35,546 bases of DNA from Octopus bimaculoides (taxonomy: Eukaryota): positions 56,286,173 to 56,321,718 of the forward strand of contig NC_068996.1 of the NCBI RefSeq assembly GCF_001194135.2. Direction: 5' to 3'. Positions 2,201 to 29,150 of this stretch are shown here, piece by piece. The notes beneath the pieces were generated by a model. It worked only from the letters and a program-made list of their open reading frames with translations. It made no database searches and was not told the origin of the DNA. Each line of letters starts with the position of its first letter. The first letter of the stretch is position 1. Position numbers and translations under genes: made by a program.

Positions 2201-2417
2201 TTTTTGCTTTTTAGCTCCACCAGTTGCAAGTGTCCAGATACTGTTTGTCAAATAAACATTGGATTCTGGTCAATGCTGTTAAACAGTGATTCGAAGAGCC
2301 ATTCATTTTGTATTTATCTGAAAGACTGAATAAAAATGTAATTGTATGTGACAGAAGAAGTAACACTTCAAATTAGTGATGTTATCATACTTTAAGTATG
2401 TATTCAGCTAAAAGGAA

Positions 2418-2462
2418 CATACATACATACATGCATACATACATATATGCATACATATATAT

Positions 2463-2507
<45 letters not shown>
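2418..2507. repeat. (TACA)n/(CA)n microsatellite abutting an 803-N gap (2508-3310)
   Basis: Seen directly. Confidence 0.95.
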
Positions 2508-3310
2508 NNNNNNNNNNNNNNNNNNNNNNNNNNNNNNNNNNNNNNNNNNNNNNNNNNNNNNNNNNNNNNNNNNNNNNNNNNNNNNNNNNNNNNNNNNNNN
2601 NNNNNNNNNNNNNNNNNNNNNNNNNNNNNNNNNNNNNNNNNNNNNNNNNNNNNNNNNNNNNNNNNNNNNNNNNNNNNNNNNNNNNNNNNNNNNNNNNNNN
2701 NNNNNNNNNNNNNNNNNNNNNNNNNNNNNNNNNNNNNNNNNNNNNNNNNNNNNNNNNNNNNNNNNNNNNNNNNNNNNNNNNNNNNNNNNNNNNNNNNNNN
2801 NNNNNNNNNNNNNNNNNNNNNNNNNNNNNNNNNNNNNNNNNNNNNNNNNNNNNNNNNNNNNNNNNNNNNNNNNNNNNNNNNNNNNNNNNNNNNNNNNNNN
2901 NNNNNNNNNNNNNNNNNNNNNNNNNNNNNNNNNNNNNNNNNNNNNNNNNNNNNNNNNNNNNNNNNNNNNNNNNNNNNNNNNNNNNNNNNNNNNNNNNNNN
3001 NNNNNNNNNNNNNNNNNNNNNNNNNNNNNNNNNNNNNNNNNNNNNNNNNNNNNNNNNNNNNNNNNNNNNNNNNNNNNNNNNNNNNNNNNNNNNNNNNNNN
3101 NNNNNNNNNNNNNNNNNNNNNNNNNNNNNNNNNNNNNNNNNNNNNNNNNNNNNNNNNNNNNNNNNNNNNNNNNNNNNNNNNNNNNNNNNNNNNNNNNNNN
3201 NNNNNNNNNNNNNNNNNNNNNNNNNNNNNNNNNNNNNNNNNNNNNNNNNNNNNNNNNNNNNNNNNNNNNNNNNNNNNNNNNNNNNNNNNNNNNNNNNNNN
3301 NNNNNNNNNN

Positions 3311-3546
3311 CAGGTGGCACATAAAATACACCATTTGAGCGTGGCCGTTGCCAGTACCGCCTAACTGGCCTCGTGCGGGTGGCACGTAAAAAGCACCCAC
3401 TACACTCTCTGAGTGGTTGGCGTTAGGAAGGGCATCCAGCTGTAGAAACTCTGCCAAATTAGATTGGAGCCTGGTGTAGCCATCTGGTTTGCCAGTCCTC
3501 AGTCAAATCGTCCAACCCTAGCTAGCACGGAAAGCGGACGTTAAAC

Positions 3547-3588: not shown

Positions 3589-3916
3589 GAGATAAGTTAT
3601 TCTAGTGGATATCATATTGTCTCTCAAATTCGGTTTAGATGTCGGCTATCCACAACAATCCATTTTATGGTACTCAACCTTAGAAAGAAAAACTGGTACT
3701 AGTAATACCAGCAGAGGTGATTATAAGACCAGCATACCATCGAATATAACCAGTAACCAATATTACCTTCAACTGAATACCAACACAGAATGCTTGTTTG
3801 AATTAGTGATGATCACTTGATGGAATTGCAGCAACTAGGATGCATAATTGCATGCAGAGCAATGTGCAGCTGCTGCAGTAGAAACATATGTTGGTCATTG
3901 TTATATTTGCTAAGCC

Positions 3917-4295
3917 AAGTGAGACCAAAATCCAAGGCCTCTGCCAGGGATGTAGCCAGCCCACTTACGCGTAACATTCCTTCATTGAACATTTGAGCAA
4001 GATCGTTGCCAGTGCCGATGGACTGGCTCCTGTGCAGGTGGCATGTAAAATACAGCATTTCAAGCATGACCGTTGCCAGTACTGCCTGACTGGCCTTTGT
4101 GCCGGTGGCACGTAAAACACCCACTACACTCTCGGAGTGGTTGGCATTAGGAAGGGCATCCAGGTGTAGAAACTCTGCCAAATCAGATTGGAGCCTGGTG
4201 TAGCCATCTGGTTTCACCAGTCTTCAGTCAAATCGTCCAACCCATGCTAGCATGGAAAGCGGACGTTAAACGATGATGATGATGATGATGATGAT
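3917..4295 (+). mobile_element. SINE-like family B copy with (GAT)n tail and internal ~60-bp subrepeat
   Basis: Direct repeat of 3311-3586; cgttgccagt..ctggc..gtgc.ggtggca.gtaaaa occurs twice internally (~4004-4050 and ~4071-4118). Confidence 0.85.
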
Positions 4296-10224: not shown

Positions 10225-10448
10225 GGCTGGCAGAAACGTTAGCACGCCGGGCGAAATGCTTAGCGGTATTTCGTCTGCCGCTACGTTCTGAGTTCAAATT
10301 CCGCCGAGGTCGACTTTGCCTTTCATCCTTTCGGGGTCGATCAAATAAATACCAGTTACGCACTGGGGTCGATATAATCGACTTAATCCGTTTGTTTGTC
10401 TTTGTTTGTCCCCTCTGTGTGTAGCCCCTTGTGGGTAGTAAAGAAATA
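10225..10448 (+). mobile_element. SINE family A, full length (tRNA-like head, central gcctttcatcctttcggggtcgat domain)
   Basis: A-box-like ggcagaaacgttag and B-box-like gagttcaaattcc; colinear with at least 5 other copies in the window. Confidence 0.9.
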
Positions 10449-10631
10449 ACACACGCTATCACATACACACACACACATACCGACCATCTTCATACTCTCC
10501 TGTCCCAGAAAGCACTTTCTGTTCATTCCTTCTATTTCCGATCATTTCAAAACTGTAACGTCACGTGGACTGTTGGCCACTTTTTTACCCTCCGTCTTCC
10601 TTCTTTCCCTTTGGATCTTCCTGCTTTTCCT

Positions 10632-11886: not shown

Positions 11887-12110
11887 GGCGATCAGGCAGA
11901 ACCGTTAATACGTGGGACAAAACAAAATCCTATCGTAATTACTTCCGGCTCTTCACGCTCTGCGTTCAAATTCCGCCGAGATAGCCTTTGCTTTTTATCC
12001 TTTCAAGGTCGATAAAATAAAGTATCAGTGGAGCACCGGAGTCAATGTAATCGGCTGCTCTATCCGTTTAAAATTGCTGGCCTTGTGTTAAAATCAAAAA
12101 TTATATTATA
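11887..12110 (+). mobile_element. SINE family A
   Basis: gttcaaattccgccgag...ttatcctttcaaggtcgataaaataaagta...aattgctggccttgtg. Confidence 0.8.
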
Positions 12111-12190
12111 AACGCCAATTAGAAGGAAATTAATAGAAAAGAGAGAAACAGCATCGTCAGTGTGTCTGTGTCTTTGCTATGTCTCACATA

Positions 12191-12583
12191 TGTAGGGAAG
12201 TGGTTATACACCATTAGGTGTACTCCGCTTCCGTACATTAAATTTCTTGAAGAAACAACGGAACGCAGATTCTGAACTATCAACACAACAATATTTATTA
12301 CAATAGAATCCAGCAGCACTTCGCCCTTTGGTTACTGAGACGCCGTCAATGATGTTGCGTGGTTATTTGTCTAACTACAGAGTTGGATTGTTGGAGAGAG
12401 GCTGCTACGACGTCTAGGCCCTTCGTCGGCCAGGGTGAAAGAGGGTGAAAAGAAGCGCGAAAGCTTGGATATCGATGACTACGCATGCGCATGAGACTCT
12501 TCCTGTATTCCTTCCGGAACTAGTCCCTGCGCATGCGTGGATAAAAACTCCGGAAATGTCATCTGCTATAAGGCGTCACTACA
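12191..12583 (-). repeat. 3' LTR
   Basis: tgtagggaag...gcgtcactaca; about 15 substitutions versus 14614-15006 (manual count). Confidence 0.95.
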
Positions 12584-12595
12584 TGGCTCCCCCTC
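12584..12595 (-). other. Polypurine tract
   Basis: Minus strand GAGGGGGAGCCA immediately 5' of the TGTAGTG start of the 3' LTR. Confidence 0.85.
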
Positions 12596-12960
12596 GAGTG
12601 CCGAAAGCACGAAAATAGAAAATTTGGAGCGGCGCCTGAGGCAAGATGGCCACCGAAACCACCCACAAGATGTGGCACAAACACACACAAGGAAAAATCA
12701 AAGAAATGATGTACACTTGTGAGATACATGCATGCAATGTACAAAAGAATTGACAATGACAAAACAATCGTGATGACAACTGTCCAGGAAACTGGAATCA
12801 CGCGATGTAAAAGACTGATTTTTTTTTGTTTTTTTCTGAAAGGAAAGAAAATATATGAGTGCACAAGTGTGTGTGTGTGAGAAAGTAACGCATAACATAG
12901 AAAGAGTGACTATAGAGTAAAACCAGTTCGTATTAAAGTTCCACGAGGAGAATAGAATGT

Positions 12961-13311
12961 TCATACGTAGGAAGTTGTGGTCAAGGAGCAGAGCTGTAGG
13001 TGAACGTCAAATGCTGGGACCTGTGTTACCTGGTACGGAATATTCTGGCTGGTTAGTTCTGGTCTGTTGATCGTGAGTGGAAACATCCACTCTAACAGGG
13101 TCGAGATAAAACCTCGCTTGTTGATGTTGGTGTTGCTGGCGACGACAATGGTAGACAGTACATTGGTGGTGAAAACGTCAGCGCTGGAACTGGCTGTAGC
13201 TGTGTTCTGTATGTGTGTTTGCGATGGTGTATGCATTGGTAAATATGTTGACAGTGGTGTGTGTGGTGGTTGTGACAGGGCGTCTATTTGAGAGATACCG
13301 TTGAGTGGCAT
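12961..13311 (-). CDS. Hypothetical 116-aa Ser/Thr-rich ORF inside the LTR element
   Basis: Open frame in element sense orientation; no recognised domain; may be non-coding. Confidence 0.25.
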   Translation of the reverse strand: MPLNGISQIDALSQPPHTPLSTYLPMHTPSQTHIQNTATASSSADVFTTNVLSTIVVASNTNINKRGFISTLLEWMFPLTINRPELTSQNIPYQVTQVPAFDVHLQLCSLTTTSYV

Positions 13312-14495
13312 TGCTTGAAAATGCTGTCATGAATTCNNNNNNNNNNNNNNNNNNNNNNNNNNNNNNNNNNNNNNNNNNNNNNNNNNNNNNNNNNNNNNNN
13401 NNNNNNNNNNNNNNNNNNNNNNNNNNNNNNNNNNNNNNNNNNNNNNNNNNNNNNNNNNNNNNNNNNNNNNNNNNNNNNNNNNNNNNNNNNNNNNNNNNNN
13501 NNNNNNNNNNNNNNNNNNNNNNNNNNNNNNNNNNNNNNNNNNNNNNNNNNNNNNNNNNNNNNNNNNNNNNNNNNNNNNNNNNNNNNNNNNNNNNNNNNNN
13601 NNNNNNNNNNNNNNNNNNNNNNNNNNNNNNNNNNNNNNNNNNNNNNNNNNNNNNNNNNNNNNNNNNNNNNNNNNNNNNNNNNNNNNNNNNNNNNNNNNNN
13701 NNNNNNNNNNNNNNNNNNNNNNNNNNNNNNNNNNNNNNNNNNNNNNNNNNNNNNNNNNNNNNNNNNNNNNNNNNNNNNNNNNNNNNNNNNNNNNNNNNNN
13801 NNNNNNNNNNNNNNNNNNNNNNNNNNNNNNNNNNNNNNNNNNNNNNNNNNNNNNNNNNNNNNNNNNNNNNNNNNNNNNNNNNNNNNNNNNNNNNNNNNNN
13901 NNNNNNNNNNNNNNNNNNNNNNNNNNNNNNNNNNNNNNNNNNNNNNNNNNNNNNNNNNNNNNNNNNNNNNNNNNNNNNNNNNNNNNNNNNNNNNNNNNNN
14001 NNNNNNNNNNNNNNNNNNNNNTACACAGAGTCGGGAAAAAAAACTGAGTGGGCACAGACATGATGATAACAACTCTAAAGGCATAACATTGTGGTGCATG
14101 TGTAGAACTGGGTGCGTGCGAAGAAAGTTCAATCTATGACTGTTGAAGAACGTTGCTCGTGTGGGCTTCCATAGAGTTATCCGGTTAGTTCTTGGTCGGA
14201 TAGCTGTTCGAAATGCTGTATTTACTTATGTCAGCGGTTTCTCTGGTGGATCTATGCATCGGGTTGCATTGCATTCTCTGGCAGGTCGAAAGTGAATCGT
14301 GGGTGTCCATTGTGTCGGTGAGTTCTTTTCCTTTGTGATGTGCGACAGTCGAAACAAAACCTATGCAGAGAAAGTTGTTATTCTTGTGTTCGATGTTTAA
14401 GGCTACACTGGAAAGCATGTGTGAGACAGCGACGGCTCGTGTAGTATTATTGGTCGGTAGTTCAAAGTTTTCGGCTGCAGTTGTTCTTGATTCGA

Positions 14496-14613
14496 GGTCA
14501 CCAATTGTAGGGAAATGGTTGAATCGAATCACGTCGGGGTCACCAATTGTAGGGAAGTGGTTGAACCGAATCACGTCGGGCTGTATGAATCGAATCACGT
14601 CGGGGTCACCAAT
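14496..14613 (-). repeat. Tandemly reiterated U5-tip + tRNA-Trp primer-binding site
   Basis: Full TGGTGACCCCGACGTGAT at 14594-14611 and 14528-14545; partial copies at 14570-14580 and 14496-14503; the LTR tip (plus strand tgtagggaa.tggtt) starts at 14614, 14548 and 14506. Confidence 0.92.
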
Positions 14614-15006
14614 TGTAGGGAAGTGGTTATACACCATTAGGTGTACTCCGCTTCCGTACATTAAATTTCTTGAAGAAACAACGAAACGCAGATTCTGAAC
14701 TATCAATACAACAATATTTATTACAATAGAATTCAGCAGCACTTCGCCCTTTGGTTACTGAGACGCCGTCAATGGAGTTGCGTGGTTATTTGTCTAGCTC
14801 CAGAGTTGGAATGTTGAAGAGTGGTTACTACGACGTCTAGGCCCTTCGTCGGCCAGGGTGAAAGAGGGTGAAAAGAAGCGCGAAAGCTTGGATATCGATG
14901 ACTACGTATGCGCATGAGACTCTTCCTGTATTCCTTCCGGAACTAGTCCCTGCGCATGCGTGGATAAAAACTCCGGAAATGTCGTCTGCTATAAGTCGTC
15001 ACTACA
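14614..15006 (-). repeat. 5' LTR
   Basis: TG..CA ends; minus-strand AATAAA at 14717-14722; tgcgcatgcg and ccggaa motifs in the presumed U3. Confidence 0.95.
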
Positions 15007-15102
15007 CATACAAACACACGCACACACTAGCGCGCGTATGCACAGATGAGTGTATGTATCAAGGTATATATCAGCACTGAGAGACAGACATAAATATATA
15101 TA

Positions 15103-17213: not shown

Positions 17214-18057
17214 ATCGAGTAAAATTTACTGCTCAGAGCGAAACACTAATTATTGAAAAACAAAAAAAACTGAACTACGTAATTTGAATATTTTTTTCAA
17301 ACTGAAAAACCATAAAATGACTAACTGGGCTTTCACATCGACCAAAGCACTTTTGCGTCGCCTTCTTTGTGCATAGTCTTGTATTGATATGTCTGAAATC
17401 AATATTTCGACTGAGTTTCAGTTCGATGCTGAGTCAACCAAAGGTCGCCTAGCGCCACTGGTCTGATATGTTTGGTCTGAGACAGTTCTTTATCTGTTGA
17501 GGTTGCCATTACAAACTTATGAGAAAAATCCAGAGTGTTGCACAAAAATGTGAATGTTTTTTTTTTCCAACTTAGAGTTGTACATTTTCTTGACTAAATC
17601 TACGGATTTAAGTTAGGGTCGGTTTCCAGAAGCTGCTATAGCGTGTCTGTAAGTTCATAAGAAAGTTCTATGCCATTCATATGAACAGGATGGCGTTGTG
17701 GAAACTGCACGCTCTTCGTCATCAAAAGATTGTTCTATTTGTGAGCGTAGCCTGGTACCGCTGAAAGAATGAGAGAAATGTTTAGAAATTTTCTTTATAG
17801 CTTTGAAGCTTGTCGTAAATCATTAATACCAGAATCGACAAAGACAAATCGATGTCTGAAATAATAATTCCACATAAGTGTCAGGATCTTTTGCCTGACT
17901 CATCATTTGACTTTCCTACCACCAAAGAAACGAATAAAAAAATTTTGTTTTCCCCCATTAATGTTATACTACTTTAACTTAATTGCAATTCGCAGCTGAC
18001 TCTTAGTGACATCTTTTGATTCTGTCAACAAAATGTCAAATTGATCGCGTAGTTTCT

Positions 18058-18290
18058 TATTTCTTTATTACCCACAAGGGGCTAAACATAGAGGGGACAA
18101 ACAAGGACAGAGAAAGGGATTAAGTCGATTACATCGACACCAGTGCGTAACTGGTACTTAATTTATCGACCCCGAAAGGATGAAAGGCAAAGTCGACCTC
18201 GACGGTATTTGAACTCAAAACGTAAAGACAGACGAAATATTGCTAAGCGTTTCGCCCGGCGAGGTAACGTTTCTGCCAGCTCGCCGCCTT
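18058..18290 (-). mobile_element. SINE family A, full length with 13-bp TSD
   Basis: TCGCGTAGTTTCT at 18045-18057 and 18291-18303 flanks a complete copy. Confidence 0.95.
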
Positions 18291-24608: not shown

Positions 24609-27180
24609 CTTCTTTTATTGGCCACAAGGGCCGAATACAGAACAAATTGGAACAATACAATACAAGGGACAAGTGGTGTTGAACAATGCCGTGTATACAA
24701 TAAGTAACAAAAAAATAACAAAATTTAATAAGAATTCCCCAAAAGCAGGGAGTTCCTCACAGGGACAACTGCAGAACCCCACACACCCTGGTTATCCTGA
24801 CCACCAAGTGGACCTCAGTAGGCGCCTCTCTCCTCAACTCAGATTTACAAACGAATGTTCAGAGTAGATGCACCCAGCTTTCAGCAAATTTACTGAGGGT
24901 TAGAACTTCCCTCTCTACCCTCATTGGGACTTTAAAAAGTCAATGAGGGCTTGGCCGAAGAGGAAAGTATCTGTCGTCAGTCCTTTCAATCTCGTCCACC
25001 ACACTACCTTCTTCGCCATAGCCACCAGACAGAAGTAAACTGCCTTTCCTTCCCAGCTAAAGGATGGCAGCGATCTTCACGATGGATTCGGCTGATAACC
25101 GGATCCGTCCTACACGTGATAACAGTTGTCCGACAAAGCTCCACAAGTCAGTAATGCACGGACACTGGACGAGTGCGTGCATGACGGTTTCGTCGCCCTG
25201 CGCACCCCTCAGACAGATCCATCTGGCAGCACTTCCGTGTCTGTAGAGTTTGTCTCGAACCGTCATAGCTCCCCGGTAGCACTGCCAGGCTAGAGATTTC
25301 TGGAAGTTATCCATAAGCCCCAGCCCGAAANNNNNNNNNNTGATCCTTTCCAACGCCCAGAGCTTCCCCAAAGATGCCATCACTCTTTCCCGCCACTAAT
25401 CCCCTATAGAACTCCATAGCGGAACTTCCACCGACCGAGTTGTCCGACAGGTAGAAAGCTAGCGCTTTCCTACACTTCAGGTGCCAAACGCCTTATTTGG
25501 TCTACGTTTGATCCAGGACTGTAGCGCCGTCAACGAGATGAGCTGCAGAAAATCTTGCTTGACAAACGGCGACCACACCTGGTCACCGTTAAGAAAATGT
25601 TGGAGATGTTGTAGCCTCAGTGCGTGTCTGCGCATCATTAGCCACGGCATGCCCAGTCCTCCACTCAGCGGTTGTTGACAGCTGTCTGACGAGTGGAAAA
25701 GTATGCGCTCCAGCTTGGTCAGCCATGAAGCAGTGCAAGGGACGACGGTCAGGTGGTAATAGATGACGGAAGCGATGTACGCATTCGCCACCTCCAACCG
25801 ACCTTTCAGGGATAGTTTCTTCTCTGCCCATTTTTGGGTGAGACGGACAGCCCAACTCGTCACATCCCATAAGAACTGGTGGGATGTGACCAAACCAGAC
25901 CCCGAGCAATTTAACCGGTTCTTCTGTCCAGCGCCAACGACTTCTCCTGATTAAATTTTGCTCCTGTCATCACTTCGTACCCCCTTAAGGCAGAGCCGAT
26001 CACCTCAATTTCCGAGTTGTATAAGGTCGGGGATTTTTTCCATGTTTTCCGGCTTCACAAGGAGCAGGATTTCAATGGTTATCCAGGACCAGTTTTCCTT
26101 GCTGCTCCGTTTCACTACTAGAAGTGACTCCGAATCCTCTACCACGCACGCTATGATCCATCAGACGTTCACGCCTGGTATGTTTATTCTGGCAGTTCTT
26201 TTTGAGAGGTAGGTTGGGTACAGGACTCACTCCTCACTCCATCGAGGCGTTACTGCATGTTTACGTGCAAGTTTCTCACTTGTGAAGAGGACTTCGATGC
26301 TGGCATTTTGCCTGCCTCTTTGTAAGTGGGCCACGTCTTCTAAGATGTCCTTCAGAATCTCCTACACTTTATATATAGATGCTATTTCTACTCGCCTGCT
26401 CTAACGCGCGACATATTTAAAATAAATAGTTTTTTCTTTCATTTCCAACAATTCAGGAGGTACAAGAACCGCTGCTTCATCCCACTCAATTTCTATGAAT
26501 TCTTGGCTTGGGCCAATTCTTTTACCTCTTCATTCAGGGTCAGCGGAAACATTTCTTTTTTAAAGCTGGCTTCGTCGGAAATTTTAAAAAAATTCGTGGA
26601 GTTATTGTTGTGGTCGGAGTTCTTTTCGTTATTTAATTTTGTCTTTGATTTGATGATTTCTGTTTCGCAGGTGTCAATCGTGTTCGTTGTGGTCTTGCTC
26701 TAATTTTTACTCTCTTCTTTCTCTCTCTTTTCCGTCTTCGCATTTCTGCTGTTCTTGCAGCTGATTTCACATGCTCCGCGAGCTCTCACGTTGCTTAGGC
26801 TGTTGTTGTTGTCGCTGGGAGTGAGTGATATGAGGTGGGGGATTTTCTTCTGTGGGTGGGTTAGTGGGAGAAACGGCTTTCCCCCTCAACGCTCCCATGA
26901 TGGTCGCTGATGCCGATGGTGATGTAGATGATGACGACGCCATCTTGTGTGTTCATTTTTTTTTTACACAAGATGGGGCATTTTCTAAGTGCAATAGATA
27001 ATAAAACGAATAAATTCTGGGGCAGAAACAACCACCAAACACCTGTCAAAAGGCTCCAGGTGTTCTTATTGTCAGTTTATAGCAAGAATTTATGAGATAT
27101 TTATAAAGACAGGGTGAAAAACATATTTTAACGCATAACTTACGAAGCATGTTCGTAAGAACGTCTTACGTATTCCGTAG

Positions 27181-27887: not shown

Positions 27888-29150
27888 CGTTTCTTTATTG
27901 GCCACAGGGGTCGAACACAAATCAAATAAAGACGATACAATACAAGGGACAAATGAGGCGAGGAACAATGCTAAGTATACAATAAATAGCAAAAACAATT
28001 AACAAACCAGTTAAACAATAATAATTTCCCAAAAGGGAAAAGTACCTCACAGAGACAACCAAGTGACCCCATACATTCTGGTTATCCCGACTGCTAGATG
28101 CATCTCAGCAGACGCCTATCTCCTTCTCAATTCCTCAGGTTTAGAAACGAATGTTCAGAGCAGGTCCATGCACACGGGCCATCCTCGCCACATGCACCCA
28201 CCTTTCCAAAAATTTACTGAGGGTTAGAACTTCCTTCTCTACCCTCACTTTTCTTTTCAAGCAGAACTTTAAAAAGTCGATGAGAGGTTGGCCGAAGAGG
28301 AAAGTATCTGTCTTCAGTGCTTTCAATCTCGTCCACCACACTACCTTATTCGCCATAGCCACCAGACAGAAGTAAACTGCCTTTCCTTCCCGGCCAAAGG
28401 GTGGCAGCGATCTTTATGACAGACTCGGCTGATAACCAGATTCGTCCTACATGCGATAACAGCTGTCCGACAAAGCTCCACAAGTCAGTAATGCCCGGAC
28501 ACTGGACGAGTGCGTGCATGACGGTTTCGTCGCCCTGCGCACCCCTCAGACAAGTCCATCTGACAGTACATCCGTCACTACAGTTTGTCTCGAACTGGCA
28601 GAGTTCTTTGATAGCACTGTCAGGCCAGGGATTTCTGGAAGTTATCCGAAAGTCCTCCGACCCCCCCCCCCNNNNNNNNNNNNNNNNNNNNNNNNNNNNN
28701 NNNNNNNNNNNNNNNNNNNNNNNNNNNNNNNNNNNNNNNNNNNNNNNNNNNNNNNNNNNNNNNNNNNNNNNNNNNNNNNNNNNNNNNNNNNNNNNNNNNN
28801 NNNNNNNNNNNNNNNNNNNNNNNNNNNNNNNNNNNNNNNNNNNNNNNAGTTAATCGATCCCTCCCAACGCCCAGAGTTTCCCCGAGGACGTTGTCGTTCT
28901 TGCCCGCCACTAACCCCCTATAGAACTTCATGGTGGAACTTCCACCGACCGCATTGCCCGACTGGCAGAAAGCTGTGAGCGCTTGCCGATACTCCAGGTG
29001 CCAAGCGCCTTTTCCTGGTTTACGCTTGATCCAGGATTGTAGCTCTGTCAATGAGACGAGCTGTGGAAAATCCTACCTGACAAACGGTGACCACACCTAC
29101 TCACCGTTAAGAAAGTGCTGGAGATGCTGCAACCTCAACGCAAATATGTG
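27888..29150 (-). mobile_element. L1/Tx1-like LINE, copy 2, 5'-truncated 3' end
   Basis: LRLQHLQHFL..WIKRKPGKGAWHLEYRQAL..DETVMHALVQCP..VVWWTRLKALKTDTFL..RKVRVEKEVL..ERWVHVARM; 3' UTR ends cctgtggccaataaagaaacg then (ATT)n. Confidence 0.85.

Follow-up and report, generated by a model that had tools for sequence, protein, structure and literature searches.

A tandem array of U5-tip and tRNA-Trp primer-binding-site modules behind the 5' LTR of a short non-coding LTR retrotransposon copy

How does a module that spans the junction between an LTR and its primer-binding site (PBS) come to stand four times in a row, and what would the repetition mean for reverse transcription? The question is raised by a 35,546-nt stretch of DNA, analysed here as a whole and referred to as the window. 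At 14489-14628 (140 nt) of this window, a 42-bp module is arranged in four head-to-tail units that adjoin the 5' LTR of an integrated element; two of the units are intact and identical and the other two are damaged. The window is part of a draft, gap-rich and micro-satellite-rich eukaryotic assembly, which bears on the trust to be placed in the array. It contains nine N runs of 10-803 nt, and nearly all of its 88 TRF rows are di-, tri- or tetranucleotide arrays.

The array belongs to a single integrated copy of a non-coding LTR element that occupies 12191-15006 on the minus strand and measures 2816 bp as assembled (~2.8 kb). In element sense, the 5' LTR occupies 14614-15006 (393 bp, delimited by direct repeat and alignment) and the 3' LTR 12191-12583 (393 bp, TG..CA, delimited by direct repeat, global alignment and blastn). 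The two LTRs align without gaps by global alignment and blastn and are identical at 378 of 393 positions (96.2%). The 15 differences, 10 transitions and 5 transversions, correspond to an LTR divergence of 3.8%. The internal region, 12584-14488 as assembled, includes a 685-N scaffold gap at 13337-14021. A target-site duplication, CATA, directly abuts the outer edge of the left LTR at 12187-12190, and its right copy, equal over the 4 bp, lies at 15007-15010; a 4-bp match of this kind has a chance of 1/256. The 3' LTR has no array unit added to it: its end is the canonical U5 tip, adjacent to the target duplication. The initial annotation had placed the array behind the 5' LTR of an element, and the minus-strand element with its paired 393-bp LTRs bears this out.

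Three features set the minus orientation: a PBS 2 nt past the CA of the right LTR, a purine run 3 nt from the left LTR and an AATAAA on the minus strand. The AATAAA lies at 14722-14717 in the 5' LTR, about 105 nt ahead of the U5 end, and the LTR carries this motif in the minus orientation only. The purine run, read from the sequence at 12587-12595 (minus strand), is a candidate polypurine tract 3 nt upstream of the 3' LTR; at 9 nt it is short, and it might serve as such a tract in the minus orientation, with which it fits. The opposite orientation, suggested by a TGG-start sequence next to the left LTR on the plus strand, was considered and rejected. It needs a tRNA with a base other than C at the near-invariant position 61, and it would also be left with neither an AATAAA in the LTR nor a purine tract.

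The locus thus has the structural marks of an LTR retrotransposon, namely paired LTRs with TG..CA, a 4-bp target-site duplication, a PBS and a short candidate polypurine tract. Coding capacity is another matter. The internal region has no similarity to gag or pol, and no Pfam family rises above noise in the element-sense frames of either sequenced part. The sequenced internal DNA has no wholly contained ORF of more than 116 aa and holds short ORFs only. The 685-N gap would be too small for gag-pol, provided that its size is roughly right. Since gag and pol are absent from the sequenced parts, the element does not qualify as an autonomous LTR retrotransposon of the Ty3/gypsy, BEL/Pao, Ty1/copia or retrovirus type, and its want of coding capacity marks it as non-autonomous. 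A TRIM usually has LTRs of some 100-250 bp and stays under about 1 kb in total; the 393-bp LTRs and the 2816-bp element rule this class out, and an intermediate-size non-autonomous LTR element fits better. In one published description, TRIMs are very small, and their short terminal repeats enclose a short internal domain (PMC6934838). To judge by its sequence, the locus is a short non-autonomous LTR retrotransposon copy primed by the 3' end of tRNA-Trp.

In element sense, the 42-nt module begins with the 15 terminal nt of U5, which end in CA, and continues with an AT spacer, the 18-nt PBS and a further 7 nt; on the plus strand each unit therefore reads 7-mer, PBS in tRNA sense, AT, LTR tip. 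All four units are on the minus strand and are numbered here from the LTR outwards. Unit 1 (14587-14628, 42 nt) is intact: its tip, 14614-14628, is the true 5' LTR end, and its non-LTR part, 14587-14613, comprises the AT, the PBS at 14594-14611 and the 7-mer. Unit 2 (14563-14586, 24 nt) is damaged and retains part of the tip and 11 nt of the PBS, together with a 7-mer that has one substitution. Unit 3 (14521-14562, 42 nt; PBS 14528-14545) is intact and 100% identical to unit 1. Unit 4 (14489-14520, 32 nt), distal and damaged, has a tip with one substitution, the AT, 8 nt of the PBS and the 7-mer, and unique leader lies beyond it. Full PBSs are thus present at 14528-14545 and 14594-14611, partial PBSs in units 2 and 4, and CA-ended tips at 14506-14520, 14548-14562 and 14614-14628. 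These counts are the same as those of the initial annotation.

Independent repeat searches recover the same structure. TRF reports a period of 42 with 2.1 copies, 93% matches and a score of 157 at 14492-14580, and a repeat search finds four copies at spacings of 42, 42 and 24 nt. The 43-mers at 14520-14562 and 14586-14628 are 100% identical and lie 66 nt apart; a period of 66 in place of 42 was rejected, as the 66-nt halves do not match each other. The head-to-tail copies go well beyond chance. A 17-mer core is found twice in the window where 0.02 occurrences are expected, and the 15-nt tip, with up to 2 mismatches allowed, four times where 0.10 are expected; 0 of 100 shuffles reach two and four, respectively. 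Both strands stay open across the array, as the unit lengths of 42 and 24 are multiples of 3, and two ORFs run through it, 14185-14742 (minus strand, 185 aa) and 14363-14698 (plus strand, 111 aa). A coding repeat was nevertheless dismissed: no homologue of either array ORF was found among 5.8 billion proteins, and the 185-aa ORF is without a Pfam match.

The 18-mer and the base preceding it are, in both intact units, identical to the consensus that Rfam RF00467 (RSV_PBS, the model for Rous sarcoma virus, whose primer is tRNA-Trp) gives for the PBS. This letter-for-letter match upholds the earlier recognition of the 18-mer as a tRNA-Trp PBS. The two RF00467 alignments score 19.8 and 19.2 bits, far short of the gathering score of 47, and cover the PBS only. 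The U5-IR/U5-leader structure of RF00467 is unmatched, and no Rfam match reaches gathering level anywhere in the window. Read from its letters, then, the site has the sequence of a tRNA-Trp PBS, yet the locus is not a member of the RF00467 structured family. ARAGORN finds no tRNA gene in the 35,546-nt window. That the 18-mer matches the host's own tRNA-Trp, and the identity of position 57, are deduced from the Rfam consensus and general tRNA rules. A scan of viral and prokaryotic collections with a 15-mer gave 206 matches, with no tRNA around any of them by ARAGORN; these are chance matches and viral PBS-like sites.

A PBS pairs with tRNA positions 59-76, and the positions that come next, A58, R57, C56, psi55 and T54, are nearly universal in tRNAs. 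The predicted match at this locus runs on into them. A 22-nt tRNA-sense stretch is present at 14524-14545 and again at 14590-14611. Scored against the universal T-loop T54-psi55-C56-R57-A58, which it fits if R57 is G, the match continues past the PBS for 4 nt in units 1 and 3 (to position 55), 5 nt in unit 4 (to position 54) and 3 nt in unit 2. With R57 left free, a 4-nt continuation has a chance of about 1/128. The 22-nt match described in the initial annotation holds for the intact units if R57 is G; the damaged units depart from it, unit 4 extending 5 nt and unit 2 extending 3 nt in place of 4. Since unit 4 borders unique leader, the extension appears to be part of the ancestral leader and not to have been added unit by unit.

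Such an extension has precedent. Plus-strand strong-stop DNA has its main stop before m1A58 and minor stops at psi55 and m5U54 (PMC13191261), and m5Um54 is a second stop where m1A58 is missing (PMC8599865). In lentiviruses and spumaviruses, a 'primer over-extension sequence' just after the PBS lets over-extended products transfer (Muthuswami et al. 2002, J Mol Biol 315:311, as cited in PMC13191261). The HIV-1 initiation complex pairs 22 nt of primer (PMC7472051). The contrast once drawn between the long match and a halt at m1A58 accordingly marks no anomaly, as the match ends at the known secondary stops psi55/m5U54. The extended match is known in kind and may be a new example of the logic of primer over-extension: by analogy, it would let plus-strand strong-stop DNA that had passed m1A58 still anneal in second strand transfer. 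Eight viral contigs carry the same 15-mer followed by CCA, and in all eight the neighbouring base breaks the tRNA match.

The nearest known parallel to the extension is the lentiviral and spumaviral primer over-extension sequence, with which the predicted match would share its complementarity directly 3' of the 18-nt PBS and its end at tRNA position 55 or 54. It differs from the lentiviral case in its primer, which is tRNA-Trp and not tRNA-Lys3, and in its carrier, a non-coding LTR retrotransposon known from the sequence of one copy. The 22-23-nt match suggests that the 'second stop' logic of lentiviruses and tRNA-Lys3 may occur in a tRNA-Trp-primed retrotransposon outside retroviruses; its occurrence beyond retroviruses would argue for an old, general device.

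The repeated tip may also matter to the folding of the leader. At the U5 end (14614-14660, minus strand), the predicted leader RNA fold pairs the 15-nt tip with upstream U5 around a small hairpin (z = -2.98). The position of this pairing is reminiscent of retroviral U5 inverted-repeat stems. If the model holds, the extra tips could compete for the same U5 pairing partner.

Searches for relatives of the element returned little. Within the window, blastn of the LTR and the internal parts finds the two LTRs only, with no further copy and no solo LTR. Translated ORFs across the array, on both strands, have no match in a collection of 5.8 billion proteins. Against a representative library of 1.84 billion, the LTR ORF gave three matches only, all spurious and to unrelated tandem-repeat translations. 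An exact look-up of five element ORFs and one neighbouring ORF in public assemblies found none on record. A DNA pattern made of 13 nt of the PBS, the 2-nt spacer and the LTR heptamer matched 0 viral contigs and 1 metagenome contig, Ga0058701_10082747, which was rejected as a family member: it holds an unrelated eukaryotic element with a single site. That contig (L001 1240-1461) is eukaryotic, with exons and an intron, and the intronic element combines 13 nt of this tRNA-sense 3' end with a 2-nt spacer and an identical LTR-end heptamer; a 22-nt copy of that tip lies 196 nt away.

Other repeats are scattered through the window. A SINE-like repeat forms an inverted pair at 10226-10454 and 18052-18280 (229 nt, 89%), and a third, partial copy is seen in the pair 10283-10349 and 11955-12021 (67 nt, 85%). 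It has no Rfam or ARAGORN match and may resemble cephalopod SINEs. Two ORF fragments on the minus strand, 25477-25893 and 28620-29051, resemble the C-terminal part of a LINE reverse transcriptase and have no Pfam match. The first has two relatives, at 62% and 46% identity, in Logan assemblies only (sample SRR11869391); the second has a peptide motif in common with the first and is interrupted by an N gap. The minus-strand ORFs 3813-4217 and 2408-3457 have a near-identical peptide stretch in common, which suggests another repeat family; 3813-4217 is without a Pfam match.

For the origin of the array, we propose tandem duplication by template switching of reverse transcriptase at a strand-transfer hot spot, followed by carriage as neutral baggage, an account to which we give about an even chance. 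The enzyme would have switched template where both strand transfers occur, either in the cycle of this copy or in an earlier one, and the 42-nt module spanning the U5/PBS junction would have been re-copied three times. Two units would later have lost sub-unit stretches by deletion, and the array would have been carried on. It could be tolerated as baggage because each intact unit is a complete initiation module. As the 3' LTR ends at the canonical tip by the target duplication, the last priming event would have used the LTR-proximal site, unless the array was born in that same cycle. A template end defined by RNase H was considered as the cause of the 15-nt tip length and set aside, as known RNase H cleavage near the primer does not support it.

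The placement and the age of the array both bear on this account. By TRF, it is the sole complex-sequence array of period >26 in the 35.5 kb, and it is placed on the strand-transfer site, the duplicated stretch starting 15 nt short of the U5 end and running 7 nt beyond the PBS. Sub-unit deletions number three in ~170 nt of array and none in 786 nt of LTR (Poisson ~0.0014 if one per 786 nt is taken as the rate), very small numbers from a tandem array, a kind of sequence that itself has raised indel rates. The damaged units carry three substitutions in ~54 comparable nt, similar to the 3.8% divergence of the LTRs, which on equally small numbers puts the array at about the age of the insertion and not younger. 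The joints share a 2-nt (AA) microhomology; slippage in host replication would leave identical joints with such microhomology just as readily, which counts against an origin in reverse transcription. These arguments are all drawn from one locus.

Host slippage is the main competitor. After integration, slippage or unequal exchange in the host could have duplicated 42 bp across the LTR/PBS border, giving birth to a minisatellite private to this locus, and later slippage could have damaged two of the units. The tandem structure with its identical joints and 2-nt microhomology is what such an event would leave, the abundance of simple repeats in the window indicates a slippage-prone genome, and the 3' LTR is without any unit. 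The identity of units 1 and 3 over 43 nt points the same way, though such identity has P = 0.19 even at the age of the LTRs. On the other side, the remaining arrays of the window are all micro-satellites or low-complexity sequence, with none built on a complex unit of this size, and a random 42-bp duplication has a small chance of enclosing the 20-nt spacer and PBS. Sub-unit deletions are confined to the array and spare the LTRs, and damaged and intact units differ about as much as the LTRs do, so that the array is not young. Weighing these points, we lean towards an origin at the time of reverse transcription over slippage after integration, and consider the latter possible but the less probable of the two. 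The initial annotation had offered either slippage or mis-transfer during second strand transfer or a heritable multi-PBS leader, and between these, too, the arguments, all of them indirect, tilt towards an event of reverse transcription. Much lower still we place an assembly artefact, in which a short-read assembler, stuttering over a repeat-rich element near a scaffold gap, would have produced the array or its unit number. The assembly is indeed a draft with nine N runs, one of them, the 685-N run, inside the element and 465 nt from the array, and an exact 43-nt repeat with copies 66 nt apart is open to mis-resolution by a small k-mer. The four units are non-identical, however, with distinct deletions and substitutions that give unique joints which a stutter would not invent, and the whole 140-nt array is within ordinary paired-read reach; we regard this explanation as very improbable.

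The remaining alternative gives the array a purpose. It would be a selected, heritable multi-PBS leader with priming at any intact unit, a CA tip in each unit, a unit number shifted by mis-registered plus-strand transfer, and a role as a silencing buffer or in the titration or attraction of tRFs. In its favour, an intact unit lacks nothing that a module needs, having the tip, the spacer, the PBS and the putative over-extension match; two units out of four are undamaged; and engineered two-PBS vectors reportedly initiate at both sites. In addition, 3' tRFs of 18 and 22 nt act on mammalian PBSs (PMC7472051), and the intact units match 22 nt. Damage to the other two units speaks against selection on them, and the lack of a U5 extension in the 3' LTR means that distal priming did not produce this copy. 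More perfect 22-nt sites would bring more exposure to tRF silencing, not less, and the copy is non-coding and 3.8% diverged. A leader shaped by selection in this way therefore strikes us as improbable, and the sponge or target for 3' tRNA fragments suggested in the initial annotation finds no support in the analysis. We are similarly doubtful, if marginally less so, that the array is a heritable family trait in which each intact unit is a self-sufficient start module and minus-strand synthesis can begin from any of them.

If the array were heritable, priming at a distal site would add 42 or 66 nt to the LTRs of the progeny and place a PBS within U5, and the number of units would drift through mis-registered plus-strand transfer. 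The leader would then be a natural counterpart of engineered two-PBS vectors and possibly a buffer against PBS-directed silencing. A cDNA primed at unit 3 would, from the arrangement of the modules, end correctly, with LTRs 66 nt longer and a PBS inside U5. The proposal in the initial annotation that the array offers alternative integrase ends is reasonable to the extent that full units carry the 15-nt CA tip and the 2-nt spacer; the 3' LTR, for its part, shows no sign of their use. Were the array common to independent copies, it would show a natural leader to hold several complete start modules for reverse transcription. The site used could then be told from sequence alone, by how long U5 is in both LTRs, and so could the way in which strand-transfer errors reshape a retroelement leader. 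None of this implies a present function at the locus, where the array is most likely a by-product of reverse transcription. What the draft assembly offers is a single decayed copy devoid of genes, and the array in it is for now a curiosity for which an ordinary origin is plausible.

The array is an unusual variant of known PBS duplications. We found in the literature no natural head-to-tail array of complete U5-tip and PBS modules, an absence that proves little, as text searches are noisy when PBS also denotes a buffer. The closest parallel to the duplication comes from HIV-1, where 14% of isolates carry the MAL-type partial PBS duplication, a 23-nt insertion that follows the PBS (PMC3185550). 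Like the present array, it is a tandem duplication that touches the PBS and lies in the leader right behind it, and in HIV-1 it is heritable. In contrast to the 23 nt of the MAL type, the unit here is 42 nt long, includes the whole PBS, the 2-nt spacer and 15 nt of U5, and is present in four copies. The 'two PBSs' of Gypsy and Ty3 are separate sites at the 5' and 3' RNA ends that pair with different parts of one tRNA (PMC1635307). The bipartite PBS of these invertebrate and yeast LTR retroelements thus shares its wording with the array, but it is not made of tandem copies of one site. Closer in kind are the engineered retroviral vectors with two PBSs, which, in work attributed to Voronin and Pathak (J Virol 2004), reportedly start minus-strand synthesis at either. 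The vectors resemble the array in that a single leader offers the same tRNA two or more complete PBSs. The vectors are laboratory constructs with their PBSs apart, whereas the array is natural and head to tail, with its own copy of the U5 end before each PBS.
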